This document shows, piece by piece, positions 16,399-32,786 of a DNA stretch of 64,000 nt. The stretch lies in the sequence record OQ708376.1. The stretch is one strand, 5' to 3'. The notes beneath the pieces are model-generated. The model did no database searches and had not been told where the DNA came from. It was given only the letters and a program-made list of their open reading frames with translations. Made by a program: the position numbers and the translations under genes. Within the stretch, counting starts at the first letter, position 1; every line of letters begins with the position of its first letter.

Positions 16399-16451
16399 AA
16401 AAGATTAAAAAAGGGATTGACTCCGGTCAGTCCCTTTGCTATTATATATTC

Positions 16452-16498: not shown

Positions 16499-16619
16499 AT
16501 ATAAGTATTCAGTACTGAAAACTATTTTTAAAAAAGTACTTGCATTGTACTTAGAATCAAGTATAATGTTTTACATAGAGAGGGGGAAATGGTTCTCCCT
16601 GGTAATAAGGAATAAAATC

Positions 16620-17803: not shown

Positions 17804-18028
17804 ATGGCTAACTTTGATGAACTGATGCGGGAAGTAGCTAACCTGGCAGAAGAGAAGAAATCATTCGATTCTATCTATAACACCGCTCACCGTGATTCAG
17901 TACTGGCATGTACTCAGGATCAAAAAGATGAACTAATCGCCACCTATCATGAAGCATGGAAGTACTACCGACAATGGGAGAAAGAAGAAAGTGAGTCTAC
18001 CATTGACGGCCTCAATAATCTAATCTAA
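17804..18028 (+). CDS. acidic helical early protein
   Basis: cassette. Confidence 0.75.
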   Translation: MANFDELMREVANLAEEKKSFDSIYNTAHRDSVLACTQDQKDELIATYHEAWKYYRQWEKEESESTIDGLNNLI

Positions 18029-18104
18029 AAGTTTTATTTCAGTACTATTGACATAGCTTGATAGTACTGATGTAATAACTTTACTAACTACAAGGGGAAA
18101 CATA

Positions 18105-18362
18105 ATGGAACAGTTCACACAATATCGGGTAAATCCTCAAGCTATGGCCTACGTAGAAGACCATAAAACATTACCAGTACTGCAACCAGTTAAAGGCCAT
18201 ATCTATCGTGCTATGTCGTGGAGTACTGCACAGGATGGATATAAAACCGTTGCCGTGGGTATGTATTGCGGGAATGGTGAATGGTTTGATCCAAATAATC
18301 CGGTAGCCATTGACAGTACTGAAAAAATGAAATGGGCCGACTACATCGAAGATATTTCATAA
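18105..18362 (+). CDS. hypothetical protein
   Basis: promoter and RBS. Confidence 0.75.
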   Translation: MEQFTQYRVNPQAMAYVEDHKTLPVLQPVKGHIYRAMSWSTAQDGYKTVAVGMYCGNGEWFDPNNPVAIDSTEKMKWADYIEDIS

Positions 18363-18451
18363 AACTATTTGACAGTACTAACCAGTAATGTATAATGTTT
18401 TACATAGAGCGGGGGAATAGTTCTCCCGTCAATAGTTTGGAGTAAAACATT

Positions 18452-18652
18452 ATGTCTATCGCTATCGCCCTGGTTGAAGTACTGAAAGAAGCTAAAGCCA
18501 ACCTTATCGATGTACAGATTAAGGAATTACAAAATGGTTTAATCGGCTGTACTTGTACCGCTGGTGGAGCGGCAGACTATCGGGAATTCGAATCACTTGA
18601 ATCGATGGTCCGTTATCTTACCATGATCGTAGAAGATTGGAGAATCATCTAA
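18452..18652 (+). CDS. hypothetical early protein
   Basis: cassette. Confidence 0.75.
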   Translation: MSIAIALVEVLKEAKANLIDVQIKELQNGLIGCTCTAGGAADYREFESLESMVRYLTMIVEDWRII

Positions 18653-18709
18653 CAAAAAAGAATAAAAAAAGGGATTGACTCCGGTCAGTCCCTTTGCTAT
18701 TATATACTC

Positions 18710-18750
18710 ATAGACAAAAACTAGCCCACTGGGTGCAGGAGTGTATCTAA
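18710..18750 (+). ncRNA. candidate small RNA S11
   Basis: TTGACT-17-TATTAT, then AGCCCACTGGGTGCAGGAGTGTATCTA. Confidence 0.45.
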
Positions 18751-18898
18751 AATATATAGTTAATAACGGTGAGTAACTATCTGCTGGTGGGGTGAAAACT
18801 ATTAATAAAAAAAGTATTGACAAAGTATATCAGTACTGCAATAATGTATCTCGTAGGGCGGCAATGGTGCGACGGCCCACAAAGTTAGGAGATTCAAA

Positions 18899-19231
18899 AT
18901 GAGTACTTCAATCGCTATCGTTAAAGCTTTCATCCGTACCAATGTTTCATCTGTATTCATCGACGGTCTGGATCGGGAAGTAGAATACTCAATCATTATC
19001 GCACAGACTGCAAACGGTGCTCGGTATATCCTTAATGATAGTGAAGCAAATCACTACTACTTCACTAAAGCTACTGGCTTTAAACGCATCGATGCTGACG
19101 TAGTATACACTAAGATGAATAAGCTGGTAGACAAGATTAACGCGAAAGGTACTATCGATTTACAGTACTGGACCGAAACCGATCCAGAATATGGATCTCA
19201 CCGCTACCTGAATCCAGGTATTAAAATGTAA
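18899..19231 (+). CDS. conserved phage hypothetical protein
   Basis: AGGAG RBS; IDLQYWTETDPEYGS C-terminus. Confidence 0.75.
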   Translation: MSTSIAIVKAFIRTNVSSVFIDGLDREVEYSIIIAQTANGARYILNDSEANHYYFTKATGFKRIDADVVYTKMNKLVDKINAKGTIDLQYWTETDPEYGSHRYLNPGIKM

Positions 19232-19320
19232 AAAGTACTTGCATAGTACTTAGAATCAAGTATAATGTTTTACATAGAGAGGGGGAAATGGTTCTCCCTC
19301 CTAAATTAAGGAGTTTTATC

Positions 19321-19722
19321 ATGACCTTCTCAATCAATTCCTTCGCTGACGTTTTAGTACTGGCTCGGACTTTCGGTAAAGATGCACTGGAGTACGCTGT
19401 AAGTAATGGTACTATCCAACCGGAACAGTGCCGCATCATTGGAAACTGCAAACGTTGGGCGGTATCCAATACTATTGCACTGGAAAACTTCCACGATGGC
19501 AACAATGAATATTCTGTTGATGTAGTATTCGAAGCCGTTGATCTCGGCGGTATCTATAATACTAACCTGAATGATGTGCGTATCGTTCGCACGGGGTTCG
19601 GTGCTTATGATGTATCTATTCGTGAAGCTATGAACACCGGATACATTAGCAAGGACTTACTTGCTCACATCATGCAGCTGTGTACGGAACGTAACGAAGC
19701 ACGCACTATCTTAGGACTGTAA
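19321..19722 (+). CDS. hypothetical early protein
   Basis: cassette and AAGGAG RBS. Confidence 0.75.
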   Translation: MTFSINSFADVLVLARTFGKDALEYAVSNGTIQPEQCRIIGNCKRWAVSNTIALENFHDGNNEYSVDVVFEAVDLGGIYNTNLNDVRIVRTGFGAYDVSIREAMNTGYISKDLLAHIMQLCTERNEARTILGL

Positions 19723-19790
19723 GCGTTACACATCACCAAACATCATAGGCCGCCTTGTAGCGGCCTTAACTATATCAGGAGGGCATACAT

Positions 19791-20000
19791 ATGTTCTATA
19801 CAGTATACAGCGTTCTAGGTACTATTGCAGGCGTACATGATAACGTCAATGATGCTATGCGTACAGTACTGCAACAGGTTCCACTAAAGCCTAAGACCAT
19901 TAAGCAGATGACAGCACGACTAACCAGGGCGACCGATGGCGTGGAAGTATGGCAGGACTACGGGGATACACAGATAATCGTTAGCGTAACGAAGGATTAA
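19791..20000 (+). CDS. hypothetical protein
   Basis: AGGAGG RBS. Confidence 0.7.
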   Translation: MFYTVYSVLGTIAGVHDNVNDAMRTVLQQVPLKPKTIKQMTARLTRATDGVEVWQDYGDTQIIVSVTKD

Positions 20001-20028
20001 TGCGTAAAGGGATCTAGTACTGATTCAG

Positions 20029-20094
20029 AAAAAAGTCAAGGCGTTTTTAAAATTATGCGTTAAAAAAATGCATAGGTAATCCCTTGACTTTTTT
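20029..20094. repeat. perfect 13-bp inverted repeat at region boundary
   Basis: AAAAAAGTCAAGG (20029-41) / CCTTGACTTTTTT (20082-94). Confidence 0.8.
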
Positions 20095-20249
20095 GAAATA
20101 AAAGGGATTGGACTATGGCAAAATGCGTAGGGGGCTAAAGGGCGGGTAACCTTAGCGACTTCGATAAAGGGGTATTACGAATAAAATGTTATTGACTTTT
20201 TATACAATTCATATATTATATGATTGATATTATTTTCAAGGGAGTCCCT

Positions 20250-20447
20250 ATGCGTATTTTAACTCAAGCAGAACACCACGAAAGACTTATCAATAACATG
20301 GCTATGATAATGTATAAGTCACATGAACGTGGTATTTCCTATAAGCGTGAATTAATTATGGCACTATTCATTGGAACTAACTTTCAGGAAAGGTATGTCA
20401 AGGATTGGATTTGGTATTTAATTGAAGATGTAACGAGTAAACTATGA
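20250..20447 (+). CDS. GTNYQ-family paralogue 1
   Basis: FIGTNFQE. Confidence 0.85.
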   Translation: MRILTQAEHHERLINNMAMIMYKSHERGISYKRELIMALFIGTNFQERYVKDWIWYLIEDVTSKL

Positions 20448-20644
20448 AAATGCGTAAATTAACCGAAAAAGAATATCAAGCACTGTTACGTAAAAACTTC
20501 ACAAAGATTTATAATACAGACACACACGTAGAACGAATGGAGTTATACCTTTTGATTACATTGGGAACAAACTATCAGGGTAGATGGGTGTGGCAATATA
20601 TGGATACATTGAAAAATAAAATATTGTCCACGAGGAAACAATGA
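20444..20644 (+). CDS. GTNYQ-family paralogue 2
   Basis: LGTNYQG; ATGA coupling. Confidence 0.85.
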   Translation: MKMRKLTEKEYQALLRKNFTKIYNTDTHVERMELYLLITLGTNYQGRWVWQYMDTLKNKILSTRKQ

Positions 20645-20850
20645 AAACTATAACACGAACCCAATCATACGGTCTTATCTTGAAATACATGGACTTAATG
20701 GTGGATATCAGCAAAGACCTTCCTAAAACTGAAATTGAAGTTGCAAGAGCAGAGATCCGCATGTTGGCTGTACTGAACACAAACCATCAGGAAGATTATG
20801 TTGAAGAATGGATTCGATTTTTAATAGAAGATATAAAGAGTAAACTATGA
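20641..20850 (+). CDS. GTNYQ-family paralogue 3
   Basis: LNTNHQE. Confidence 0.85.
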   Translation: MKTITRTQSYGLILKYMDLMVDISKDLPKTEIEVARAEIRMLAVLNTNHQEDYVEEWIRFLIEDIKSKL

Positions 20851-21062
20851 TTATTATAGAAAACTCATATCAATATACTGAACGCATCGCTGCCAGACAA
20901 CTTGAAATCCTCATAATATACGAAGAGACTTCTGATTTAAACTTAGCCGAGGTATTGGAAAATGAAATACTTTTGGGTGCATTCTTAGGAACAGACTATC
21001 AGAAGTATTATGAGGAAAAGTATTTGTCATCTCTTGAGAAATATATCAGGAGCAAATTATGA
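20847..21062 (+). CDS. GTNYQ-family paralogue 4
   Basis: FLGTDYQK. Confidence 0.85.
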   Translation: MIIIENSYQYTERIAARQLEILIIYEETSDLNLAEVLENEILLGAFLGTDYQKYYEEKYLSSLEKYIRSKL

Positions 21063-21271
21063 TTTTTTTAACACCAGAAGAATATAAGAAACGTTTCAAT
21101 TCCGCACAGGGTGAAATCTTACTTATATACCTTTCAAATGCAGACCTTAACTTATCAAGGGTATTAGAAAAAGATTTACTTATGGGTGCATTCCTTGATA
21201 CAGACTTTCAGGTGTATTATGTAGGGGAATACTTAATTGCACTTCAGAATTATATCAGGAGTAAACTATGA
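21059..21271 (+). CDS. GTNYQ-family paralogue 5
   Basis: FLDTDFQV. Confidence 0.85.
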   Translation: MIFLTPEEYKKRFNSAQGEILLIYLSNADLNLSRVLEKDLLMGAFLDTDFQVYYVGEYLIALQNYIRSKL

Positions 21272-21495
21272 AACATTTAAGTAATATTGAGAAGATGAGA
21301 ATTATCATTGATGCATTAAACAAATACGATACCCTTTTACAAATAAAAGGTTTAACTCGATTGGAACACAAGATAAACACCACCGATGTACGCATGATGG
21401 CTGTACTGGGGACGAACTTCCAGGAAGAGTATGTTATTGCACACATAGTTGCACTCAAGAATTACATTATGGACAAATGTAATGAACATCATTAA
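21268..21495 (+). CDS. GTNYQ-family paralogue 6
   Basis: VLGTNFQE. Confidence 0.85.
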   Translation: MKHLSNIEKMRIIIDALNKYDTLLQIKGLTRLEHKINTTDVRMMAVLGTNFQEEYVIAHIVALKNYIMDKCNEHH

Positions 21496-21706
21496 TAACT
21501 TTGAATACGAGGCCCGTGCTAAGAGTGCCAGAAAAAAAGAGAACACCATTTACTTCACTATGATGTACTTACAATGGACTGAAATTGAAGAAAAGGTTGC
21601 TGAAGTATGGATGTTGGAATTCATGGGGACGCAGTATCAGAATAGGTTTGCGGGTGAGTATATCAATGTTCTTATGAAACAAATAGAAAGAAAGGAAAAG
21701 AACTAA
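21482..21706 (+). CDS. GTNYQ-family paralogue 7
   Basis: FMGTQYQN. Confidence 0.85.
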   Translation: MNIINNFEYEARAKSARKKENTIYFTMMYLQWTEIEEKVAEVWMLEFMGTQYQNRFAGEYINVLMKQIERKEKN

Positions 21707-21864
21707 TGGTTTTCATTAACATATCTGACCAACTCGATACTAAACTAGAAGTCGAGCAGAGTGAGGGATGGATGCTGTACTTTCTTGGAACTTCTCATCA
21801 AAATTTTTATATCCATGAACACATAGTTGCACTCACAAATCTAATAAGGGATAAATGTAAATGA
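21706..21864 (+). CDS. GTNYQ-family paralogue 8 (52 aa, N-terminally short)
   Basis: FLGTSHQN; below track cutoff. Confidence 0.75.
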   Translation: MVFINISDQLDTKLEVEQSEGWMLYFLGTSHQNFYIHEHIVALTNLIRDKCK

Positions 21865-22118
21865 AACACTTGACGAACGATGAATATTCACTTAGAATTC
21901 GAAAGCTCACCCCAGAAGCAAGAGTAATCTACGATGACGGTGAACTTTCATGGAACGAGATGAAAGTTAAAGTTCATGAGCTATGGTTGCTGTACTTTGT
22001 GGGAACCCAATATCAAGAGAAATATTGTACCGATTATCTTGAACAACTAATGGATCTTATACAGATAAAACTAAATGAACGAATTGTGGAAAAATATGAA
22101 GACTTTATCAAGCACTGA
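21861..22118 (+). CDS. GTNYQ-family paralogue 9
   Basis: FVGTQYQE. Confidence 0.85.
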   Translation: MKHLTNDEYSLRIRKLTPEARVIYDDGELSWNEMKVKVHELWLLYFVGTQYQEKYCTDYLEQLMDLIQIKLNERIVEKYEDFIKH

Positions 22119-22347
22119 GTATCAGACTGCCCTCTTCTCCCTTCTAAACACTCTCCGCACGAACAATAAACTTTATAATTCCCGTGAAGCTGATATCGTC
22201 AACGGTGATGTTTATCTTATGAAATTCATTGGAACAAACTATCAAGAACTGTTCACTCAACGATATATCTCTGCACTGAGAAACGAAATATCAGATAAAA
22301 CCCGCCAAGCCAGAAGAGAATGGAAGAGACAATGCAACAAAGACTAA
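22096..22347 (+). CDS. GTNYQ-family paralogue 10
   Basis: FIGTNYQE. Confidence 0.85.
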   Translation: MKTLSSTEYQTALFSLLNTLRTNNKLYNSREADIVNGDVYLMKFIGTNYQELFTQRYISALRNEISDKTRQARREWKRQCNKD

Positions 22348-22583
22348 ATCACAAAATGTATTTTAAACTATTACAGAATCTGGGACAAAAACACTATGAT
22401 ACAGTATCTGAAATATTACCCTATGATATCATGCGTTTAATTCATAGTGAGGCAGAGATGCTTGTACTGATGACAGGCACTGATAAAACAGCAATTACCA
22501 AATCTATAGATATGTTCATCGATGCACACTGCCAACACATTAGAACCGAGATATGGAGACGTGAGAATGAAAATCCTGACTGA
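22320..22583 (+). CDS. GTNYQ-family paralogue 11 (divergent)
   Basis: EMLVLMTGTDKT. Confidence 0.7.
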   Translation: MEETMQQRLNHKMYFKLLQNLGQKHYDTVSEILPYDIMRLIHSEAEMLVLMTGTDKTAITKSIDMFIDAHCQHIRTEIWRRENENPD

Positions 22584-22782
22584 GCATGAGTATTACAATA
22601 GGTTAAGAACTATACAAGGAAAAGTCTCGTGGACTTTTTTAGATAATTCTATTGCAGAAGCGGACCGATGTGTTATAATAGCTGAAATGAAGCTATTACT
22701 CTTCATTGGGACAAACTATCAAAGTATCTACATAGACGCATGGTTAAGCAGCTTACGTCTGAAGTCGGTGAGTTTAAAATGA
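22567..22782 (+). CDS. GTNYQ-family paralogue 12
   Basis: FIGTNYQS. Confidence 0.85.
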   Translation: MKILTEHEYYNRLRTIQGKVSWTFLDNSIAEADRCVIIAEMKLLLFIGTNYQSIYIDAWLSSLRLKSVSLK

Positions 22783-22997
22783 GAAAATTAATAGGTTTCG
22801 AATATGTTAAGCTTCTACAAACCTGTGGAATCAGAAGGAGAATGATTCAAAAGGATAAAAGAATTGCCGAAGAACGAAAGTATATAATGATAACTGAACT
22901 TTATGTCTTAACACTCTTAGGCACAAACTATCAACACACTTATGTAGACCTATGGATCGATGCACTACAGAAAGAGGTTAAAAGTAAATGCAAATGA
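22779..22997 (+). CDS. GTNYQ-family paralogue 13
   Basis: LLGTNYQH. Confidence 0.85.
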   Translation: MRKLIGFEYVKLLQTCGIRRRMIQKDKRIAEERKYIMITELYVLTLLGTNYQHTYVDLWIDALQKEVKSKCK

Positions 22998-23206
22998 TTA
23001 ATTTAAGTAAAGACGAATTTTATGTTATACTGGCGAAAACTTATCCAGCACGTAAGGCCGTTTATGATAGTAACATTATTGAACCCTCAAAGAAGTTGAT
23101 TTTAGTAAATGAGATAAAGATGCTTTCAGTCTTAGGGACAAACTATCAAGAGAATGCTGTACTGATGTTAATTGATGCCCTCCAGCGAGAGGTTAAACGT
23201 AAATGA
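22988..23206 (+). CDS. GTNYQ-family paralogue 14
   Basis: VLGTNYQE. Confidence 0.85.
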   Translation: MQMINLSKDEFYVILAKTYPARKAVYDSNIIEPSKKLILVNEIKMLSVLGTNYQENAVLMLIDALQREVKRK

Positions 23207-23433
23207 AAATGATTCATTTAACTTACCATGAATATCAAAAACGTTTAAATGCATCCAGAGATATAAGGATTCAAATATTCAATAACAAAAGATTGAAGCC
23301 TGATATCAGAAAAATCAAAATTATAGAAGCAGAGTTATGCAACTTTCTAGGGACCAACTATCAGGCAGGTAAGGTAAAAAACTATCTTAGAGAACTAATG
23401 AATAGTATTGAAAATAAATGTAAGGGTAATTAA
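23203..23433 (+). CDS. GTNYQ-family paralogue 15
   Basis: FLGTNYQA. Confidence 0.85.
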   Translation: MKMIHLTYHEYQKRLNASRDIRIQIFNNKRLKPDIRKIKIIEAELCNFLGTNYQAGKVKNYLRELMNSIENKCKGN

Positions 23434-23434
23434 C

Positions 23435-23674
23435 ATGAAAATGATTAAATTATCTCAAGCAAAATATAAAGAACGCCTGGTGAAAATTGCACCTGGACTT
23501 AATGAAATCCATCACGGAGAAGTCATTAAACACGGAAATAAGATGATTATGAAACTTGAGTTAAAGGTGGGTGCATTCATAGGAACAAACTATCAGGAGT
23601 ATTATGTAGATGAATACATAATCGCACTTAAGAGATACATTGGAAGAAAACTATATCTACAAACTAAAGAATAG
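23435..23674 (+). CDS. GTNYQ-family paralogue 16
   Basis: FIGTNYQE. Confidence 0.85.
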   Translation: MKMIKLSQAKYKERLVKIAPGLNEIHHGEVIKHGNKMIMKLELKVGAFIGTNYQEYYVDEYIIALKRYIGRKLYLQTKE

Positions 23675-23703
23675 TATTGAAAATAAATGTGAGGTTGATG
23701 AAC

Positions 23704-23967
23704 ATGCAAATGATCAATTTAAGTAAAGATGAATATACCGAGCGTATGACAAAAATTACGCACAAACGTAATACAATCTATCACAACCCAGAAATTCAAC
23801 ACAGTAAGAAAATGATTATGATGCGTGAGTTAAAGATGGGTGTATTCTTAGGAACAAACTATCAAGATACAGAAGTAAATCGCTTAATCGCGGAGTTACT
23901 ACTGGAAATCAGAGGTAAGCTGTACTTTCATCAAATGACCCAACCACTGAGGTGTACTGATCGATGA
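23704..23967 (+). CDS. GTNYQ-family paralogue 17
   Basis: FLGTNYQD. Confidence 0.85.
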   Translation: MQMINLSKDEYTERMTKITHKRNTIYHNPEIQHSKKMIMMRELKMGVFLGTNYQDTEVNRLIAELLLEIRGKLYFHQMTQPLRCTDR

Positions 23968-24215
23968 ATACTATGAATAAAATTAATAAAATCGACTTAG
24001 CAGAAAGTTTTGCCAGAATGGGGGAAGCTCTGAAAAGATACGAAAAGGAATATGGTCATTTAAGCTTTTCTATAGAAAAGAGATATGAACTGGAAACAGA
24101 GTTTAAAATGCAGAGTCTCTTAGGAACACAATATCAAACAAGATATGTTCAAACTTGGATTGATTGTTTAATCCAGACAATTCATGTAAGGAACATTAAA
24201 TGCAAAATGAAATGA
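23964..24215 (+). CDS. GTNYQ-family paralogue 18
   Basis: LLGTQYQT. Confidence 0.85.
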   Translation: MNTMNKINKIDLAESFARMGEALKRYEKEYGHLSFSIEKRYELETEFKMQSLLGTQYQTRYVQTWIDCLIQTIHVRNIKCKMK

Positions 24216-24454
24216 TATACTTAACCTATAATGAATACGTCGAGAGATTAGTTCGTGCCAAGAGATATACCAATAAACGTCCAATTGACCTAAACCAAAC
24301 CCCAGCAGAAAGGAGTGCAGAAGTATTATTCCAATCACTACCATATCTTCTGGGAACTGATAGACAAGAGGAATATGTTGCACGTATGATTAGATATCTT
24401 AAAATCACTATTAAGGAAAAAGTAAATGCAAATGAAATACTTAACAGACGATGA
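24200..24454 (+). CDS. GTNYQ-family paralogue 19
   Basis: LLGTDRQE. Confidence 0.85.
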   Translation: MQNEMIYLTYNEYVERLVRAKRYTNKRPIDLNQTPAERSAEVLFQSLPYLLGTDRQEEYVARMIRYLKITIKEKVNANEILNRR

Positions 24455-24677
24455 GTTAAAAGAACGACTAATTAAATCAAGAAAACATACAAATCAACTT
24501 CCAAACGACACAAACAAGTCTCCAGCGGAAAGGAGTGCAGAAGTTTTATACATTCAACTCATGTACTTTCTTGGCACTGACAGACAAGAGTATTACATTG
24601 AAAGTATGCTTCGATATCTTAAATTCTCTATAAAGGAAAAGATACATGATCAAGTATTTAAAAATCCTAACAGTTAA
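24426..24677 (+). CDS. GTNYQ-family paralogue 20
   Basis: FLGTDRQE; recent duplicate of 19 (PAERSAEVL). Confidence 0.85.
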   Translation: MQMKYLTDDELKERLIKSRKHTNQLPNDTNKSPAERSAEVLYIQLMYFLGTDRQEYYIESMLRYLKFSIKEKIHDQVFKNPNS

Positions 24678-24888
24678 TGAATATCATAAGATTGTAATGA
24701 AAACTAATAGTGATTACGCTAAAAAATCAAACCCAAAGTACATACTGGAACACACATTTGAAGAACGTCAATTAGCTTTAGTTGAAGCAAAACTTCTTGC
24801 ACTATTAGGAACAAACTATCAGGAAGAATACAATAGAAAACTAATATACCTTTTAACTAAACATATAAGAAAAAGAAAAAATGCATGA
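24646..24888 (+). CDS. GTNYQ-family paralogue 21
   Basis: LLGTNYQE. Confidence 0.85.
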   Translation: MIKYLKILTVNEYHKIVMKTNSDYAKKSNPKYILEHTFEERQLALVEAKLLALLGTNYQEEYNRKLIYLLTKHIRKRKNA

Positions 24889-25115
24889 AACACTTGACAG
24901 ATGATGAACATGGGCTTATAGTAATGGATGTAATCAACATCGAATACAAAAAGTTGATACGCTATCGTTGTTATGAAGATAAGCAACTCGTTCTAGCAGA
25001 ACAGAAGTTGTTTCGACTCTTAAACACAAACTACCAAGCACAATACGAAGAATCGTATATGTACCTTTTGGCGAGGAAAGCAAAAAGAGATTATGAAAAT
25101 TTTAAGCAAAGGTGA
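24885..25115 (+). CDS. GTNYQ-family paralogue 22
   Basis: LLNTNYQA. Confidence 0.85.
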   Translation: MKHLTDDEHGLIVMDVINIEYKKLIRYRCYEDKQLVLAEQKLFRLLNTNYQAQYEESYMYLLARKAKRDYENFKQR

Positions 25116-25314
25116 TTCAGTAATATTACTTATAGAGAGTTCAAGTAAATTCTTAAACATAACACTGTCTGATATAGATGAAGATGACAAAGAAGTACTG
25201 AGAGCAGATTTAAGAGTACTGTTACATATCGGAACAAACCTACAAGAAGAATATGTAGAGTGCTACATCAATGAACTTAAAGAATCAGTACTGAGAAAAT
25301 GCAAATGCAAATGA
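25093..25314 (+). CDS. GTNYQ-family paralogue 23
   Basis: HIGTNLQE. Confidence 0.85.
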   Translation: MKILSKGDSVILLIESSSKFLNITLSDIDEDDKEVLRADLRVLLHIGTNLQEEYVECYINELKESVLRKCKCK

Positions 25315-25532
25315 AAATCATTACCGATGTAGAATACCTAACAATCATAAATGGACTGTTTTTGAAGCTCTTCGTCATTAACACATCAGATATACCAGAT
25401 ATGGATAAAATTATTAAGAGAAATGAAGTCTATGTTCTAGCTACCCTTGGAACGAACTATCAAGAACACGACATTAAAGATTATATTAATACACTTAAAC
25501 GAGCGATTGAACTAAAATGCCAAAACCACTAG
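25299..25532 (+). CDS. GTNYQ-family paralogue 24
   Basis: TLGTNYQE. Confidence 0.85.
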   Translation: MQMQMKIITDVEYLTIINGLFLKLFVINTSDIPDMDKIIKRNEVYVLATLGTNYQEHDIKDYINTLKRAIELKCQNH

Positions 25533-25732
25533 GAACAGCAGAATACATTGAACTCATGGGATTACACTTCTCATCCTTTCAGAAACTTATGCGAGAATCA
25601 AAGAATGATTTAGAATATACCATCAGAGGTTCCGATTTAAGAATGCTTCTCACCCTAGACACAGATTCCCAAGAGCGATTTGTCAATGAGCATATTAGAG
25701 CACTTTTAATGGAAATTAAAAGTAAACTATGA
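25517..25732 (+). CDS. GTNYQ-family paralogue 25
   Basis: TLDTDSQE. Confidence 0.8.
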   Translation: MPKPLGTAEYIELMGLHFSSFQKLMRESKNDLEYTIRGSDLRMLLTLDTDSQERFVNEHIRALLMEIKSKL

Positions 25733-25944
25733 AGATAATATCAAACCAAGAGTACTTGGCACTATTCAGGAAGAATAATCACAAATATATGGCACTTGAT
25801 TCAAGAACTGATATAAGTGAACTTGAAAAAAATCTTTTGCGTTCAGATATGATAGTACTGACACTCTTAGGAACACAGCATCAAGAGAGAACTGTTAATT
25901 CACACATAGGTATTCTTATACAGATTGTACAGGAAAAGATATGA
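25729..25944 (+). CDS. GTNYQ-family paralogue 26
   Basis: LLGTQHQE. Confidence 0.85.
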   Translation: MKIISNQEYLALFRKNNHKYMALDSRTDISELEKNLLRSDMIVLTLLGTQHQERTVNSHIGILIQIVQEKI

Positions 25945-26162
25945 GAATCATATCACAACAAGATATTCTTAAGTTCACAAGGGTTCATGCATCTGAATTT
26001 GATGCTATATTATCAAAAAGTTACAACAACCCTTATACACAAGATGTACATTACAGTGAATTATGGATGTATATACTTTTAGGTACAAATAAGCAAGAGC
26101 AAGCCGTACAGAAGTATTTGACAGCTTTACGTGATGCTACAGCTAATGGAGTATGTGTTTAA
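25941..26162 (+). CDS. GTNYQ-family paralogue 27
   Basis: LLGTNKQE. Confidence 0.85.
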   Translation: MRIISQQDILKFTRVHASEFDAILSKSYNNPYTQDVHYSELWMYILLGTNKQEQAVQKYLTALRDATANGVCV

Positions 26163-26163
26163 T

Positions 26164-26406
26164 ATGAAAGTACTATCTGAATTAGAAATGTATCATAGAT
26201 TTAATAAGTACTATCATTTACTTAAGCCTATACAGAGGATTAAATGTCCATTTGAAGAGAAACAGGTATTAATTTATGAGCATAAGTTATTTGTATCATT
26301 AGGTACGAATGAACAAGAGTATTATTTGAAGTTGTACTTGATTACATTAATAGATTTAATTCACTATAAAACCAAACAAGCTAATAAAGAGAAATATGAA
26401 AACTAA
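26164..26406 (+). CDS. GTNYQ-family paralogue 28
   Basis: SLGTNEQE. Confidence 0.85.
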   Translation: MKVLSELEMYHRFNKYYHLLKPIQRIKCPFEEKQVLIYEHKLFVSLGTNEQEYYLKLYLITLIDLIHYKTKQANKEKYEN

Positions 26407-26740
26407 TATACAACTCAAGGTATATAAATCATTTGAACATACATATATCAAAAGTAGTCTATGTAGAGATGTAATGGATTACAAGGGTAAGCCATTCACA
26501 ATTACCTATGATTCTTATGTTAGTGATTTATATATATCATTTGTTAATTACGAAAATAAAATATACAAGCACGTTGATATTAAAGATTTAAGTACTTTAT
26601 CACCAGAGGAATACTTTCAGGAATCATTAGTATGGGATTTAGAGTTCCCTATGCCATTAGTACATAAGATGATAGTACTAATGAAAGAATCTAAACAGGA
26701 GCCTAATAGTGGTTATGAAGAACACACAGTTGAGTATTAA
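26396..26740 (+). CDS. EExxFQ-motif family protein
   Basis: LSPEEYFQESLVWD. Confidence 0.8.
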   Translation: MKTNIQLKVYKSFEHTYIKSSLCRDVMDYKGKPFTITYDSYVSDLYISFVNYENKIYKHVDIKDLSTLSPEEYFQESLVWDLEFPMPLVHKMIVLMKESKQEPNSGYEEHTVEY

Positions 26741-27110
26741 AAGTACTGATAATACTAAGAGTTATACAAGCTCAAGTACTGTGACAATCGAAGTGAATTC
26801 TATTAATGCTGGTAATGCAGTAGATAAGTTCTTTATTGCTCAAGGGTACAGGAAAGATATTCATCAATACTGTTCAGTATATGGGGAGTACAATTCTACT
26901 GAAGATATAATTTATTGGTCAACACATCAAGATTATATAACTAAAATTGGCGTTCCAGATGTTAGTACTTTATCTGAAGAAGAATACTTTCAGTACAGCT
27001 TAGTACATGATGTACCTATACCTTTAGGGTTAATCAAGGGTATGCAGGAAGAGGTTCATAAGCTTAAATCCATGAGTTCAGGTACTTTCATTAGAACAGT
27101 GCAATACTAG
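26715..27110 (+). CDS. EExxFQ-motif family protein
   Basis: LSEEEYFQYSLVHD. Confidence 0.8.
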   Translation: MKNTQLSIKSTDNTKSYTSSSTVTIEVNSINAGNAVDKFFIAQGYRKDIHQYCSVYGEYNSTEDIIYWSTHQDYITKIGVPDVSTLSEEEYFQYSLVHDVPIPLGLIKGMQEEVHKLKSMSSGTFIRTVQY

Positions 27111-27111
27111 C

Positions 27112-27140
27112 TTGACAGTACTTTTTATTACTGATATAGT
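27112..27140 (+). promoter_or_regulatory. sigma70 promoter
   Basis: TTGACA-17-TATAGT. Confidence 0.75.
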
Positions 27141-27169
27141 GCACCAACGTTAATCATAGGGTACAGATT

Positions 27170-27415
27170 ATGTTAAAATTTTTAAATTTCCTTATCGTCT
27201 TGTGTATTGTTCTTGGAATTGCACCGTTTGTATTAGCGTATCTGGATTCAGATGAAATGCAGAAGATGAATTGCACAAAGACAGGACAGAGTAGAGAAGA
27301 GACGGTTATGATGCCTGTAACGGTTATTGTGAATAACATACCAATTACGAACATGATTCCTACCCTAACGACAACGTACCAGTACTCTTGTGCAGACGGA
27401 GAGAGGTGGAGATGA
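27170..27415 (+). CDS. membrane-anchored protein
   Basis: N-terminal TM helix; two later Cys. Confidence 0.75.
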   Translation: MLKFLNFLIVLCIVLGIAPFVLAYLDSDEMQKMNCTKTGQSREETVMMPVTVIVNNIPITNMIPTLTTTYQYSCADGERWR

Positions 27416-27732
27416 AATTTAATATAGCAAAAACATCGAATGTATGTATATTTGGTTATGCAGATGAGTTAGGTGATATTGACATTCTTTTGTACAAAAA
27501 GGATGGTGTTATGCATTTCAAGTACCAGGATGAAGAGGCAGACAATTATCCTTTACCTAATTTAGTACAAATGCAGGAAGAGGAATTATTCCAGTACAGC
27601 TTAGTATATGACATTGATATTTGCACGATGCCAGTACTAATTAATATTCAAAAAGTGATGCTCGATGTGTTTGATAGGCTAATACAAGGCACACAAGGAA
27701 GAACCATATATGTCAATGTACAAGACAATTAA
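27412..27732 (+). CDS. EExxFQ-motif family protein
   Basis: MQEEELFQYSLVYD. Confidence 0.8.
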   Translation: MKFNIAKTSNVCIFGYADELGDIDILLYKKDGVMHFKYQDEEADNYPLPNLVQMQEEELFQYSLVYDIDICTMPVLINIQKVMLDVFDRLIQGTQGRTIYVNVQDN

Positions 27733-27925
27733 TCAAGAATGGAAGACCCAAAAGTACAGGGAATTCAGTACTAGTTTAACAAAAGATGCATTGAATTTAA
27801 AAAGAACAGAGTTTGATATGTTTATTTTTCTTGGAACACGTTCACAGGAACAATACATTCATTATTATATAAGTTCATTGCGAACGGAGATCGTATACAA
27901 AACACAGGGTATTATAAAAAAGTAA
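27710..27925 (+). CDS. GTNYQ-family paralogue 29
   Basis: FLGTRSQE. Confidence 0.8.
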   Translation: MSMYKTINQEWKTQKYREFSTSLTKDALNLKRTEFDMFIFLGTRSQEQYIHYYISSLRTEIVYKTQGIIKK

Positions 27926-27933
27926 ACCAATAT

Positions 27934-28161
27934 TTGTACGCTACAAAGTACAGGGATTTTTGTTTAAAGGGTGGTGATGAAGATTTTTCTTTGCGATTAT
28001 CAGAATTTAATCTGTTATTTTATCTTGGTACATCGGAACAAGAAGAAATGGCACAGAAATTTATCAAGCACCTTGAACAAAAAATTCATATGCAAATTTT
28101 GATGCTTAAGGTACATAATGAGATAAACAAATATGAACCCAACAATAGTACAGGATCTTAA
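27934..28161 (+). CDS. GTNYQ-family paralogue 30
   Basis: YLGTSEQE; TTG start. Confidence 0.75.
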   Translation: MYATKYRDFCLKGGDEDFSLRLSEFNLLFYLGTSEQEEMAQKFIKHLEQKIHMQILMLKVHNEINKYEPNNSTGS

Positions 28162-28522
28162 ACAAGTAATATTCCTTTTGAATACAAGAAGTGAAATGTA
28201 TACAGAGTTTAAAGAGATTAATGCATTTTATCAGAATTTTGTAATTCAAGAGTTCAGTGATTTAATTACAGATGCATTATTTGAATTATCGGAAAAATAC
28301 AAAGGAACAGAGTTCAGTGTTAAGAATGTATTACGTTCTTTATCAAAGCGTATAATAAAATTAGATCATTTTACATTTGACAATAAAGATTTATTCAGTC
28401 ATAATCCAAGTACAGCTTTATATTTTATTCCTGATTCAGACAAAAATCATCCTATTCATTACGGATGGATTTTGTCGTACATAGTACAAGGAAAGGAGTA
28501 TCCTATTAAATGGAACGATTAG
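28133..28522 (+). CDS. hypothetical protein
   Basis: ORF track, coupled. Confidence 0.7.
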   Translation: MNPTIVQDLKQVIFLLNTRSEMYTEFKEINAFYQNFVIQEFSDLITDALFELSEKYKGTEFSVKNVLRSLSKRIIKLDHFTFDNKDLFSHNPSTALYFIPDSDKNHPIHYGWILSYIVQGKEYPIKWND

Positions 28523-28671
28523 GGCGATTAGATTATTACACAATTAATACAAATTATTTGTTGCGTAATATAAAATCCGATTACAAAATATGGATAAAGA
28601 ACAGAGATAGTATGTGTTATGAATTTTATTTAGATTATGCCATCAAACGCTTTTTAAGAGAAGAACATTAA
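28510..28671 (+). CDS. hypothetical protein (53 aa)
   Basis: fills gap with overlaps on both sides. Confidence 0.5.
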   Translation: MERLGRLDYYTINTNYLLRNIKSDYKIWIKNRDSMCYEFYLDYAIKRFLREEH

Positions 28672-28853
28672 TGCACACACCGCACAAAAATACAAAAACG
28701 ATAAATGTTTTAAATGATTCTTTATTGGTGAGTATAAATTTATATTATAAAATTCATTTAAATGGTGGTATTGAAAATTTTAGTTATTATTTGAGTGCAA
28801 TATCGCAAGAGCATTTAATATACCAAGATCATTTATTGCACCCGAATCCATAA
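28671..28853 (+). CDS. hypothetical protein
   Basis: TAATG overlap. Confidence 0.55.
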   Translation: MHTPHKNTKTINVLNDSLLVSINLYYKIHLNGGIENFSYYLSAISQEHLIYQDHLLHPNP

Positions 28854-28861
28854 GGCAAATT

Positions 28862-29407
28862 ATGAATGATATAGAATTATTAGCACACAAGATTAGTACA
28901 ATAATGCTTATCCTCAATAACAACCATCCTATATCGCAGATAGATGGAATCCTGAGTCAGAGGACAGGTGGTAGTTTATATTTGACATTAACAGAGGTTA
29001 TCGCAAGGAATTACATTGATATTGAAATCGAGAACAGTGATGCATCAGGAAAGGTTGATGTAGGTGCATTAATCAGTTCAAATCCAGTATCAGCATCCCC
29101 ATTGACCAAAGGTGTTAGTACAGGATTCGAAGGGTATTTGTGGTACAATACCAATGATGATTATTTTATATATCAGCATTCCAATACAAATTATGATGAA
29201 GACAAATTTCAGTTCATAGACCCTTATGATGAAGCTGAAGTATTTCAAAAATCATTAATCACAAAACCGCATGAGATGATGTATCTAATGTTATTCAGTA
29301 CAATGCATTTGAATCGATTAATTAAAGGTTTAAAATTTTATATTCAATTGAATTTAGTCCATGTAGTTTATGATTTATTAATGCAAGGATATAGTTATGA
29401 AGTATAA
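28862..29407 (+). CDS. EExxFQ-motif family protein
   Basis: DEAEVFQKSLI. Confidence 0.8.
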   Translation: MNDIELLAHKISTIMLILNNNHPISQIDGILSQRTGGSLYLTLTEVIARNYIDIEIENSDASGKVDVGALISSNPVSASPLTKGVSTGFEGYLWYNTNDDYFIYQHSNTNYDEDKFQFIDPYDEAEVFQKSLITKPHEMMYLMLFSTMHLNRLIKGLKFYIQLNLVHVVYDLLMQGYSYEV

Positions 29408-29708
29408 AATGATGTATACCCCAGATATGATTTATGTTGAATTAGAAGATGATGACGATGGGTGGAATTTGATTTATTCAAGAAGTTCAGGTTGGTACAT
29501 GGCACATTTAAATGATTCGATAGTTACAGATTATTTTGTAGATTTCAATACATTATCCGATGAAGAATTGTTCCAACAGCAATTAGTAATTGACACGGGT
29601 GGTTATGATGTTTTATTATTAAAAAAGATACAGAAAGCTGTTATTGATTTTAAGCCCATGATATGGCAAAGGAAATATTATGACCTCGAAGTACCGTACC
29701 AGCAATGA
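29397..29708 (+). CDS. EExxFQ-motif family protein
   Basis: LSDEELFQQQLVID. Confidence 0.8.
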   Translation: MKYKMMYTPDMIYVELEDDDDGWNLIYSRSSGWYMAHLNDSIVTDYFVDFNTLSDEELFQQQLVIDTGGYDVLLLKKIQKAVIDFKPMIWQRKYYDLEVPYQQ

Positions 29709-30246
29709 AATTCAGTACACCTACGCTAATGCAATCCTTATGGGACAAAAGTTAGCTTGTATTGTTGCAGCCTTATATAATGCACAGAAAGATTACAAGC
29801 GTCACATCCACAAATGTATTGGTATTATTCCATCGAAGTACAATACATATATTGCGTGCACGAGTCATTTTGATAAACGATTCAATACACCTGATACCCC
29901 AAATGCCAGTAGTGTTATTGGTCTTTTGGATTTCGCACCTGGTGCTGTTATTGGAAAGAATGATTTAGAGTACACATGGTATAATAAAAATGCCCCGTTA
30001 GTAATGGTAAAATATGATACAGAAACGAATAAAACAATAGAGTACAATACATATAAATCAGAGGAAGAATTTTTCCAAGGTTCATTGCTTGTGCCAGTGC
30101 GTTTGTTGTTTTATAATGTCCTTATTAGTACAGTACACAATAGTCCATTACACAAGAATCACAAAATTAATTTCAATTTTTGTGCTTATGCGATTGATGG
30201 TGTGTATGAGTGTTTAATGGAGGTATTGAGTTATGAAGCTGAATAA
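29680..30246 (+). CDS. EExxFQ-motif family protein
   Basis: SEEEFFQGSLL. Confidence 0.8.
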   Translation: MTSKYRTSNEIQYTYANAILMGQKLACIVAALYNAQKDYKRHIHKCIGIIPSKYNTYIACTSHFDKRFNTPDTPNASSVIGLLDFAPGAVIGKNDLEYTWYNKNAPLVMVKYDTETNKTIEYNTYKSEEEFFQGSLLVPVRLLFYNVLISTVHNSPLHKNHKINFNFCAYAIDGVYECLMEVLSYEAE

Positions 30247-30574
30247 TACATTTGATATTAATAAGTTAAGAGAATGGTTTTATAGTATTGAAATTGAAGC
30301 CATCCCGTATCATAGATATGAACAATATAATTTAACCAGTATTGATATCAGTGAGTTGTACGCGTATTATCAAAGTGCATTAGAGATGCATAAGTTATTT
30401 TTGAGTACAGATTTTGTTCTAAATTACAATTTTGAGGAATTTAATAATTATAATTTAGTACAGAAATATGTAGTAGCAAAGTACATGTACAATCAAGGTA
30501 TCAAAGGTTGCCTCGAATTCAATACCGTTCTTATTTTAGTTGAGGTAATTTTATGCACCGCATGTCTGATTTAG
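30233..30574 (+). CDS. hypothetical protein
   Basis: ORF track, coupled. Confidence 0.7.
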   Translation: MKLNNTFDINKLREWFYSIEIEAIPYHRYEQYNLTSIDISELYAYYQSALEMHKLFLSTDFVLNYNFEEFNNYNLVQKYVVAKYMYNQGIKGCLEFNTVLILVEVILCTACLI

Positions 30575-31050
30575 AGTTCAGTTTAGATGCAGCCTTTAAA
30601 TTTGTTCACAAAATAGAAACAATATATCGTACATTATGTGCAATAACATCAGTATCAAAAGAGTTTGATGTTGGTGAAAGGTATCAGGTGTGGAATAATT
30701 CATTTTATAATAAAGAACATTCTGCGACGGCATTTTATATTTTAGCATTTAATCCCAGCAATTGTTACCCAGAGAAGCATGAACGTTATCCAAATGACGA
30801 CATGTGGTTTGAGTACAAAGAAGATGCTGATATGTCGTCAATTGTAGTTCCTGATGATTTTAATGCACAAGATTTAACAGAAGAGTGGTGGTTCCAGCAG
30901 AATTTAGTACATGATGATATTGATTTATTTTTCTATATTGCATTTAAAATGCTTTATCACAACAATATAGTTAAAGAAAGTTTATCGTTTTCATGTCTAT
31001 ATATTGATGATTTGTACAATGAAATTCAAATAAACATGCCTGTATCGTAA
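30553..31050 (+). CDS. EExxFQ-motif family protein
   Basis: LTEEWWFQQNLVHD. Confidence 0.8.
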   Translation: MHRMSDLEFSLDAAFKFVHKIETIYRTLCAITSVSKEFDVGERYQVWNNSFYNKEHSATAFYILAFNPSNCYPEKHERYPNDDMWFEYKEDADMSSIVVPDDFNAQDLTEEWWFQQNLVHDDIDLFFYIAFKMLYHNNIVKESLSFSCLYIDDLYNEIQINMPVS

Positions 31051-31106
31051 GATATGGGCTTTTTTCGTTTTGGTATTGACAAAGAAGTGCAAAGCTGTTA
31101 TCATGT
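31038..31106 (+). terminator. terminator (GTAA tetraloop, T6) followed by sigma70 promoter
   Basis: GCCTGTATC-GTAA-GATATGGGC-T6; TTGACA-17-TATCAT at 31076. Confidence 0.7.
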
Positions 31107-31132
31107 GTAATCATTTTAAAGGAGAACATATA

Positions 31133-31645
31133 GTGAGTTTCATAATCCCAAGTACATACGAAGATGCATCAAGTGCAGTTCATAAGATTCATTATATTTT
31201 TAATTTAATTATTAGATCTGCAAAAATTAAAATGTATGCACCTCTTGTGACAAATAATCGAAATGAAGAAATTTTTATTAGCACAGACAAAATTATTTTT
31301 CCATATTTCAATGAAGATAGATTGTGGTTCATACATTTAGCTGCATTACAAAAATATAAGATGTCAATTCGTAATAATTTGGATATACCGTTATATCATC
31401 CTGATATTGGAGAGGATGAATATTTTCAGTACAGTACAGTACACCGCCATGAAGATATCTTTGTTGCTATGCTTATTGCTAAATTGAATACCGTTGATTT
31501 GGAGCAGTACAAATACAATAATAAATCATGTAAGATCATAATCCCTGCATTCATAGCTCTTTATGATTATGTGGTGCATAACAAAAAAGATGATACATAT
31601 GCTTTCAATGAAGAGTATTTGAATTTTTTTAAGGAGAACATATGA
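31133..31645 (+). CDS. EExxFQ-motif family protein
   Basis: GEDEYFQYSTVH; GTG start after GGAG. Confidence 0.75.
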   Translation: MSFIIPSTYEDASSAVHKIHYIFNLIIRSAKIKMYAPLVTNNRNEEIFISTDKIIFPYFNEDRLWFIHLAALQKYKMSIRNNLDIPLYHPDIGEDEYFQYSTVHRHEDIFVAMLIAKLNTVDLEQYKYNNKSCKIIIPAFIALYDYVVHNKKDDTYAFNEEYLNFFKENI

Positions 31646-32169
31646 GCAGTGAAGTGCTGAAATCAATGACATTCAATGAAATTGGTACATTTAAAGATAA
31701 GATCATTGATTGCATTGAATACATGATTTGTAGTAATATCGAAAGTATCGAGATATTTAACAAGACAAATCGCTCTTACCATATGATGTACATTGCAAAC
31801 AATAATGGTATCATTCCATTTATTTCGGATAGTACAATATGGTACGCATGTGATACGAAAAAAACCACAATAGGTTTACATTCATTTGAGACACATTATG
31901 ATCTAATTATTCCTGAACATTGTATGCAAGAAGAAGAATATTTTCAAATGCAATGTATACATTCACCATTAGTGTTGTTTAGTTTATATATTATACCTTA
32001 TATCACCAAATGTGTTCATGAGAATAAAGCTCCGTGGAATCATGAATTTGTATCGTTGAAGTTATTGTATAATGTATTAGTAGAATATTATGATTACAGG
32101 CACAATGGTACAATCAGTGATGTATGGGATTTTGAATCGCTAAGGGTGAAAACATACACAGGTGAATGA
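31642..32169 (+). CDS. EExxFQ-motif family protein
   Basis: QEEEYFQMQCIH. Confidence 0.8.
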   Translation: MSSEVLKSMTFNEIGTFKDKIIDCIEYMICSNIESIEIFNKTNRSYHMMYIANNNGIIPFISDSTIWYACDTKKTTIGLHSFETHYDLIIPEHCMQEEEYFQMQCIHSPLVLFSLYIIPYITKCVHENKAPWNHEFVSLKLLYNVLVEYYDYRHNGTISDVWDFESLRVKTYTGE

Positions 32170-32785
32170 TATGACCAGAATTAAAATGTATGATTTGATG
32201 CAGTACAGTAAAATTGCCATTCCAGTGCTTAATAAAGTGCTGGATGCATTCATTGCCAAATACCCTGAGAATTCAGTGTTATGTATTCCATTTAGTGTTC
32301 CAGATAAAGATGATATATTCCAAGTGAATGTCAGTACACGTGGTATTACATTACAGCAGAAATACATGGATACGGAATATTATGGAATAAAGTTGGATTC
32401 AGTACAGGGTTCAAAATCAGCCTATGATTTTTTTGTTCCTAATAATATAGAGTCATGGGAAACAAACATTTCAAAGAAAGATGAAAATGATGTTCCTATT
32501 AGTGGTGTGTTCAACAATAAAGTTTTTTATTATTACGAAACCGACAAATTCCCTGAAGAGTTATATTACAATTCAGAAATGAATGAAGATGTAGATGCAT
32601 TCATGTTTCAATTATCTTTAGTACATGATATCATTGATGTTCAAGAGTTAAGAGCAGAAATCAATTTAGCTAAAGAGTTATCGGACATGCTGCCACCGTT
32701 TAGTATGCTTTTTTGTGAAGGTGGTTATTTTTCAAAAGAAGTGTTTGAACATTTCGTAGATGTTGTAAAAGGGTTGGATATATAG
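32162..32785 (+). CDS. EExxFQ-motif family protein
   Basis: DVDAFMFQLSLVHD. Confidence 0.8.
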   Translation: MNDMTRIKMYDLMQYSKIAIPVLNKVLDAFIAKYPENSVLCIPFSVPDKDDIFQVNVSTRGITLQQKYMDTEYYGIKLDSVQGSKSAYDFFVPNNIESWETNISKKDENDVPISGVFNNKVFYYYETDKFPEELYYNSEMNEDVDAFMFQLSLVHDIIDVQELRAEINLAKELSDMLPPFSMLFCEGGYFSKEVFEHFVDVVKGLDI

Positions 32786-32786
32786 T

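Follow-up and report, generated by a model that had tools for sequence, protein, structure and literature searches.

The terminal-redundancy module of Bacillus phage SPO1 and the pre-early region of phage T5 place small early host-takeover genes at the ends of the genome. In the related jumbo phage PA5oct, the terminal-repeat genes are the early genes (PMC7318152). Here we analyse bases 1-64,000 of sequence record OQ708376.1 (the window), from Escherichia phage vB_EcoM_CRJP21 (CRJP21), a jumbo coliphage of the genus Asteriusvirus with a genome of 366,301 bp. Within it, 28 consecutive plus-strand genes, gp_50 to gp_77 (20250-26406, about 6.2 kb), each annotated as "hypothetical protein" in the record, form a tandem array of small paralogues. 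This locus resembles the modules of SPO1, T5 and PA5oct (PMC7318152) in having many small genes of unknown function on one strand, at or next to a long direct terminal repeat, with strong host-type promoters adjoining. Those modules differ in consisting of unrelated genes, typically with individual promoters, a description that fits the CRJP21 terminal repeat (1-20152) and not the array. The array instead presents one fold about 30 times, lies just outside the repeat (which ends at 20152, the array starting at 20250), is translationally coupled and lacks strong internal promoters.

Duplicated small genes are also a recognised feature of related jumbo phages, as in the 22 paralogous open reading frames (ORFs) of Pectobacterium phage CBB (PMC5259590). 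In contrast to such sets, the CRJP21 genes belong to a single family with 32 copies in 64 kb, 28 of them contiguous, and with a confident predicted fold that lacks structural relatives. What was known already, besides small early genes at genome ends and paralogue sets in jumbo phages, is the sequence cluster itself, catalogued as phrog_4148 and phrog_28039 in entries without function, structure or genomic description; the Asteriusvirus genome papers found by literature search do not mention the array. What is new is the scale, the single fold, the position of a putative coupled operon just outside the repeat, and a mosaic of alleles that varies slot by slot among phages. We propose, with a probability of roughly 0.45, that the array encodes old, maintained, early co-expressed intracellular proteins that share one scaffold and carry diversified binding surfaces, and that they would act in host takeover or counter-defence.

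The array and its family

Analysis of the junctions between the array genes showed that 24 of the 27 overlap, 12 of them by the four-base ATGA type, while the remaining three are gaps of 1, 1 and 29 nt, and a Shine-Dalgarno-like motif was present at 21 of the 28 starts. An earlier note on this DNA, made from the sequence alone, had described a 28-gene tandem run joined by ATGA or short overlaps, and both features are borne out, the run being found in the record annotation as well as in the ORF list. The note had also described small tandem genes of 52-90 amino acids; the genes are indeed small, but the upper size is 87, giving a range of 52-87 amino acids when annotated or family-consistent starts are used (the only start changed being that of gp_62).

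A hidden Markov model (HMM) built from the 28 array members found exactly four more copies in a six-frame scan of the window, with E-values from 1e-7 to 1e-12, and all other ORFs in the window gave E > 0.2. These are the two further pairs (27710/27934 and 40734/40930) that had been noticed before, so that the total of 32 copies in the window stands. In leave-one-out tests, 31 of the 32 copies were recovered at E <= 1.2e-7, with shuffled versions scoring at most 16 bits. For three of the four outlying copies, the match lies chiefly or entirely in the C-terminal part of the profile.

Within the array, leave-one-out recovered 27 of the 28 proposed paralogues, the sole failure being gp_60 (E = 1). 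A profile of gp_60 orthologues matched the other members weakly (hhalign E 4.4e-4, probability 33%), in register over helix 2, the G-T-D turn and helix 3 and with a six-residue insertion. An AlphaFold2 model made without family information (input gp_60 and P0082) showed the same three-helix layout as the family, with a predicted local distance difference test score (pLDDT) of 68. Because the leave-one-out test fails, and membership depends on this weak in-register match and a model of moderate confidence, we consider gp_60 a probable, diverged member. Its orthologues are 80-88% identical, with ratios of nonsynonymous to synonymous substitution rates (dN/dS) of 0.22-0.31.

Predicted fold and conservation pattern

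The AlphaFold2 model of gp_58, whose residue numbering is used throughout, was based on the 32-member alignment and is a three-helix bundle (pLDDT 97.7; predicted template modelling score, 0.81) rather than the helical hairpin envisaged in the earlier note. The helices span residues 6-24, 31-45 and 52-84, the third being 33 residues long; the inter-helix loop has six residues, and a one-residue beta-bridge connects residue 2 to T49 of the turn.

Comparison of the 32 copies revealed that the G-T-(N/D)-x-Q turn, previously called invariant, is near-invariant, with T49 and Q52 each present in 31 copies and G48 in 28; L63 is likewise kept in 31, and no alignment column is 100% conserved. The conserved columns are M1, L4, E8, Y9, I23, E40, L43, F46, L47, G48, T49, N50, Q52, Y55, Y59, I60, L63, I67 and K70, which are spaced every three to four residues in all three helices and include one charged residue per helix (E8, E40 and K70). 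Mean column entropy was 1.4 bits in the turn compared to 2.5-3.4 bits elsewhere, with most other positions at about 3 bits or more, and the ratio of nonsynonymous to synonymous polymorphism (pN/pS) between orthologues was 0.15 in the turn compared to 0.39-0.61 elsewhere. Across 95 worldwide representatives, M1, G48, T49, Q52 and L63 are each conserved at 90% or more.

Because they recur every three or four residues in each helix, the conserved columns would form a buried seam. The spacing of T49 and Q52 is that of a helix-capping box, G48 would permit the turn, and E8, E40 and K70 contribute one conserved charge to each helix, so the conserved residues most likely hold the fold together. Most simply, what is conserved would be the fold itself (turn, helix cap and core) rather than any obvious active site in common; judging from the helical periodicity, the variation would be found on the surface of all three helices. 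The division into a hypervariable N-terminal helix and a fixed turn and C-terminal helix that had been claimed holds in part: the turn is nearly fixed, but conservation in the C-terminal helix follows a single stripe of positions, and the N-terminal helix, although largely variable, retains L4, E8, Y9 and I23. The broader suggestion of a diversified library on one scaffold fits the pattern of conserved seam positions and variable positions elsewhere.

Searches for known relatives

Searches of PHROGs matched 31 of the 32 window copies to phrog_4148 (best E 9e-27) and 16 of the 32 to phrog_28039, both of unknown function in the catalogue, with gp_58 covering profile positions 1-73 of 74 in phrog_4148 (E 4.9e-24). 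Pfam and NCBIfam scans of the 32 members returned scattered single-member noise only, and a PADLOC-DB scan matched six models, each to one member (E 6e-4 to 0.04) and none across the family. Neither the 32-member nor the 95-member profile found a significant match among PDB sequences (best E 0.5), and a Foldseek search of the PDB with the gp_58 model gave no relative among the 50 matches listed (best E 1.8). In the BFVD viral library, Foldseek matched uncharacterised Asteriusvirus proteins only. Thus the earlier statement that no known family could be recognised is upheld, the HMM searches it had called for leading only to the uncharacterised phrog_4148 and phrog_28039.

The family is also narrowly distributed. 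An exhaustive profile search of 1.84 billion cluster representatives returned 101 proteins only, all of 52-122 amino acids, corresponding worldwide to about 100 sequence types at 50% identity. All named relatives come from Asteriusvirus phages or from contigs of about 350 kb (344-360 kb) labelled Escherichia coli (e.g. P0103, P0106 and P0113). These contigs are whole jumbo-phage genomes inside bacterial assemblies, a described phenomenon (PMC12768965), and represent natural phage-host pairs. In IMG/VR, a motif scan returned six matches attributable to chance and nothing convincing as a member of the family, and a tblastn search of isolated phages with the distant member P0084 found no match.

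Several known folds were considered and set aside. Immunity proteins of colicins, pyocins and polymorphic toxins are small (about 85 amino acids) and helical, combine a conserved with a variable specificity part, and sometimes occur in tandem arrays that neutralise a diversified family of toxins. The likeness is an analogy of working only, since the array proteins have three helices, not four, with no Pfam match and no DNase immunity protein among the 50 PDB fold matches listed. For the sponge option raised in the earlier note, structural support is absent: the only match to a cyclic-oligonucleotide sponge of the T4 Vs.4/Acb2 type was Vs.4 itself (7uq2_A; E 4.9, TM-score 0.49, root-mean-square deviation (rmsd) 16.5). 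Matches to three- and four-helix bundles of the MIT/FAT type (E 2-5, rmsd 5-12) reflect generic helical-bundle likeness. Helix-turn-helix (HTH) DNA-binding domains (Cro/C1, SarA/Rot and TetR types) were rejected as well, profile matches being confined to single members (E 0.006-0.04) and the best HTH-containing Foldseek match being a TetR chain (E 3.8-6.3, rmsd about 9).

These last results bear on the improbable alternative that the proteins are small nucleic-acid-binding regulators, in which helix 2, the glycine turn and helix 3 would serve as an HTH or RNA-binding module and the paralogues would read different phage or host sequences to time expression. The helix-Gly-turn-helix arrangement superficially recalls DNA-binding motifs, 16 of the 28 array copies are basic, with net charges up to +9, and there are single weak matches to SarA/Rot-type and PucR regulators (E 0.006-0.04, one member each). 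However, the Pfam and NCBIfam matches to HTH families never extend beyond one member per family and are at noise level, and the TetR chain at E of about 4-6 is all that the PDB fold search yields. Moreover, the six-residue loop with its beta-bridge to the N-terminus and a helix 3 of 22-33 residues are unlike a short recognition helix, six copies are acidic, and the would-be contact positions are not enriched for conserved basic residues.

Comparison among phages and selection

The array is collinear and in the same place in ten relatives, nine of which hold 26-30 near-full-length copies. In the tenth, CMSTMSU (MH494197.1, labelled "UNVERIFIED"), 35 profile matches include 14 near-full-length copies and about half of the copies are interrupted, likely reflecting sequence quality rather than biology; this fragmented array was left out of the selection analysis. 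Identity varies from slot to slot as a mosaic: in the same genomes, numerous slots with 99-100% identity to CRJP21 stand alongside slots 50, 58, 61, 62, 67 and 73 at 40-70%. Some phages lack slots 56/57 and 65, and additional copies are found near slots 68 and 73. Clustering of the 288 members of ten genomes at 90, 70 and 50% identity yields 81, 41 and 32 clusters, respectively.

Mean identity among the CRJP21 paralogues is 25%, and it is higher between neighbours than between distant copies (29.4% compared to 24%; permutation p < 0.0002), the closest pairs being adjacent. That adjacent copies are closest, yet the best pair reaches only 51%, suggests that the array grew by local duplication long ago; this ceiling of 51% among paralogues, together with the presence of orthologues of each slot throughout the genus, suggests that the copies are old and individually retained. 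Tandem arrays were also found in two diverged metagenomic relatives, with 16 and 9 profile matches. In one of these two, which is highly diverged, a tandem array of at least 14 copies lies downstream of a gp_49 homologue, which is the single aligned flanking stretch, at 65% nucleotide identity.

Values of dN/dS, for which the earlier note had proposed a check per site, were mostly between 0.1 and 0.45 per slot, with higher values (about 0.7-1.4, and up to 1.7 in pairs of gp_76) for gp_51, gp_55 and gp_76, indicating that the genes are real, under purifying selection, and that each copy is a functional gene. This result counts against the view that the array is a largely dispensable, lineage-specific expansion, held by weak selection or hitch-hiking in a recombination-prone accessory region and with a redundant or marginal function. 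In favour of such an expansion, the family has no known function and does not extend beyond a single genus and a small number of relatives, dN/dS is near or above 1 at gp_51, gp_55 and gp_76, some slots have been lost in some phages, and other paralogue families fill the same region. But in addition to the low dN/dS of most slots, the old paralogues persist as 26-30 intact copies in every good-quality genome, and the array is retained in the relative with only one aligned flanking gene, making this explanation very unlikely.

Location and possible assembly

In phage phAPEC6, the array corresponds to gp467c-gp489c. The published table of virion proteins identified by mass spectrometry (PMC7247149) contains none of gp460-gp489, jumping from gp347 to gp549, in a method by which very small proteins are easily missed. 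Because no array member is in that table, the array proteins are probably intracellular. A role as a virion component was rejected on the same basis, allowing that tiny proteins can escape detection, and the hetero-polymer suggested in the earlier note is accordingly disfavoured in its virion form.

A hetero-oligomer or a set of adaptors inside the cell is a distinct possibility, although we judge it rather unlikely. Here the conserved turn and charges would dock each copy on one shared partner, which might be another copy, a phage protein or a host hub; tuning or recruitment would fall to the variable surfaces, and the coupled operon would fix stoichiometry. The near-invariant polar residues T49 and Q52 and the conserved E8, E40 and K70 might have a functional and not a structural role; the tight coupling of translation favours joint expression of the copies in set proportions; and the copies are kept together at one place in every relative. 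Helix cap, turn and core residues nevertheless explain the conservation more simply. Copy number and slot content also vary, with three slots missing in several relatives and extras in others, which is unexpected for a fixed assembly, and none of the proteins were detected in phAPEC6 virions.

Terminal repeat and transcriptional context

Positions 1-20152 (plus strand) are 100% identical to the final 20,152 bases of the record (346150-366301) and therefore constitute the left copy of a direct terminal repeat. The CRJP21 feature table lists no repeat in the stretches examined, whereas the vB_Ec-M-J record annotates its repeat. Repeats of 20-21.5 kb have been reported for Sharanji, G17, vB_Ec-M-J and fEgEco12, and restriction digests confirmed the one in fEgEco12. 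The array starts 98 bp past the repeat boundary in CRJP21 and 99 bp past it in vB_Ec-M-J, where the repeat extends to 21525 and the array begins at 21624.

The repeat is packed with small genes, each with its own strong sigma-70-type promoter. It contains 106 promoter-like sites compared to 67 +/- 7 expected, including 11 perfect TTGACA-16/17-TATAAT sites on the plus strand, and 28 terminator-like sites compared to 12.7 +/- 3.7 expected. A promoter cassette of roughly 55-75 nt is found in 24 copies between 361 and 19288 (e.g. 4407-4461, 16531-16605 and 19230-19304), 5' of the small genes, and consists of AGTACTTGCAA or TTGACA, 16 nt, TATAAT and GTTTTACATC, followed by a GC-rich hairpin. This cassette is probably the early-promoter and leader unit of the phage.

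Between the repeat boundary and gp_50 is a spacer (20153-20249, plus strand), which belongs to a 250-bp spacer (20001-20249) with a largely invariant sequence in an alignment of nine phages. It contains a candidate sigma-70-like promoter on the plus strand (20192-20219; TTGACT-16 nt-TATTAT, a 10/12 match), in which the TTGAC of the candidate -35 element is invariant in the nine phages, and a Shine-Dalgarno-like AAGGGAG (20238-20244, plus strand) before the gp_50 ATG at 20250. No perfect (12/12) promoter was found within 20250-26406, and promoter-like sites in the array are fewer than expected (41 compared to 57.5). The simplest reading is that host polymerase would transcribe the array as a single long unit whose genes are translationally coupled. 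PBECO4 has an extra 366-bp gene (locus 2549-2914) with its own promoter-like site between the boundary spacer and the first array gene, absent from the other eight aligned phages.

Proposed role of the array

We propose that CRJP21 actively maintains an operon of about 30 soluble, non-virion, paralogous mini-proteins built on one three-helix-bundle scaffold, in which the predicted exposed positions may have diverged so far that each copy presents a different binding surface. The operon would probably be transcribed by host RNA polymerase, either from the single conserved sigma-70-like promoter or by transcripts that read through from the repeat, and coupling of translation from gene to gene would then supply all the copies at the same time, early in infection. 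Most likely, the proteins would serve as an assortment of binders, with each copy directed at its own host factor or defence component. The capacity of a three-helix bundle for many binding specificities is illustrated by the protein A Z domain, a three-helix-bundle binder scaffold that tolerates near-complete surface variation. The array proteins are similarly small three-helix bundles with a fixed core, but show no sequence match or significant structural match to the Z domain, and the beta-bridge from the N-terminus to the turn and the long helix 3 are particular to the array family.

A number of observations weigh against this proposal. No binding partner is known or predicted, and the mixed charges of the array copies (isoelectric points (pI) of 4.5-9.9; 16 basic and 6 acidic of 28; net charge up to +9) provide no common physicochemical clue. 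Burial and exposure were read from helical periodicity, and the PADLOC library that was scanned covers defence proteins. The array lacks the 24-copy promoter cassette of the repeat, which would allow it to belong to a different temporal class; the function of the candidate promoter and the timing of the array are read from position and a 10/12 promoter match, and the searched literature contained no infected-cell transcriptome or proteome for any Asteriusvirus. Finally, an old, stable, collinear array mostly under purifying selection is unlike a typical fast-turnover counter-defence island.

On the other hand, slot-wise allele mosaicism, a few fast slots, and slot gain and loss are compatible with an arms race. 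In its most specific form, the proposal would describe a repertoire of about 30 natural mini-binders on a previously unseen scaffold, each neutralising a different host defence or factor, with alleles swapped slot by slot through recombination, in effect a modular counter-defence arsenal in one early operon; this stronger version we regard as doubtful.

Members of the array and neighbouring features

All members are on the plus strand; coordinates, length in amino acids and leave-one-out HMM E-value are given in brackets. The array begins with gp_50 (20250-20447, 65, E 2.9e-13), followed by gp_51 (20444-20644, 66, E 1.7e-13), with dN/dS up to 1.0-1.4 against two relatives, and gp_52 (20641-20850, 69, E 4.1e-17). 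The acidic gp_53 (20847-21062, 71, E 3e-12; pI 4.5) is 50% identical to gp_54 (21059-21271, 70, E 1.4e-15), and gp_55 (21268-21495, 75, E 1.9e-18) has dN/dS of 0.7-1.1. The slots of gp_56 (21482-21706, 74, E 1.4e-15) and gp_57 (21706-21864, 52, E 9.5e-14), a short member in which most of helix 1 is absent, each have no close orthologue in five of ten relatives. Next are gp_58 (21861-22118, 85, E 4.1e-20), the copy chosen for the structure model, gp_59 (22096-22347, 83, E 7.8e-14) and the probable diverged member gp_60 (22332-22583, 83, E 1.0), with its altered turn and six-residue insertion.

The slot of gp_61 (22567-22782, 71, E 1.4e-16) is hypervariable, with 57-61% identity to relatives. 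For gp_62 (22779-22997, 72, E 1.1e-18), the record places the start at 22842; beginning instead at the ATG at 22779 gives the N-terminus typical of the family, along with an ATGA junction. It is followed by gp_63 (22988-23206, 72, E 9.5e-16), the basic gp_64 (23203-23433, 76, E 1.2e-19; net charge +9), gp_65 (23435-23674, 79, E 2.7e-20), whose slot has no close orthologue in four relatives, and gp_66 (23704-23967, 87, E 3.1e-18), which is 46% identical to gp_65. Two allele classes, of about 43% and about 81% identity, occur within the genus at the slot of gp_67 (23964-24215, 83, E 2.9e-11). The closest pair, at 51% identity, is gp_68 (24200-24454, 84, E 1e-13) and gp_69 (24426-24677, 83, E 2.5e-17).

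The remainder of the run comprises gp_70 (24646-24888, 80, E 3.7e-14), gp_71 (24885-25115, 76, E 8.8e-9), gp_72 (25093-25314, 73, E 5.1e-17), gp_73 (25305-25532, 75, E 7.4e-19), which has two slot-related copies in most relatives, gp_74 (25517-25732, 71, E 2.4e-13), gp_75 (25729-25944, 71, E 1.6e-17), gp_76 (25941-26162, 73, E 1.4e-13), with dN/dS of 0.7-1.7 in several pairs, and the final member, gp_77 (26164-26406, 80, E 1.5e-13).

For the four outlying copies, the E-value against the 28-member HMM, in which they were not included, precedes the leave-one-out value. The first pair consists of gp_82 (27710-27925; E 1.8e-12 and 2.6e-13), within the next paralogue array, and a copy at 27934-28161 (E 2.4e-7 and 9.1e-9) that has no coding sequence in the record, an uncertain start and a profile match in its C-terminal half only, and whose orthologues are annotated in relatives. 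The second consists of gp_113 (40734-40952; E 4.8e-7 and 1.2e-7), which matches through its C-terminal half, and gp_114 (40930-41121, 63 amino acids; E 8.8e-12 and 5.8e-12).

The four outlying copies are embedded among other paralogue families (26396-45750). Tandem families that follow the array have 12 members of 53-137 amino acids (26396-45268), 8 members of 147-164 amino acids (36834-45750) and 3 members (61778-63187). Over positions 18000-32000, the terminal repeat has a G+C content of 0.36-0.41, which declines to 0.30-0.35 once the paralogue arrays are reached. No transfer RNA genes or Rfam families were found within the 64-kb window.

Within the terminal repeat, a hairpin with a 12-bp stem that includes TTGACT, followed by TATTAT, occurs at 9113-9140, 13140-13167, 16410-16437 and 18668-18695 and has the score of a terminator as well as that of a promoter. 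Just before the repeat boundary, at 20078-20109, TTGACT is also surrounded by an inverted repeat of smaller size. Near the left genome end, positions 779-907 contain degenerate repeats of 8-nt units ending in GGCT (Tandem Repeats Finder periods 24, 32 and 48), which could be a protein-binding array for packaging or replication.

Implications

Even without a function, the family marks the terminal-repeat boundary in Asteriusvirus genomes, and its analysis corrects several annotations, including the copy at 27934-28161 and the start of gp_62. If the copies are individual binders, a single operon would offer about 30 probes, and its relatives about 100 sequence types, for host factors and defence systems of E. 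coli. Such binders would also represent an organisation of host-interaction genes different from the usual mixed islands, with one scaffold and many surfaces in one coupled operon, and would explain part of the "dark" coding capacity of jumbo coliphages.

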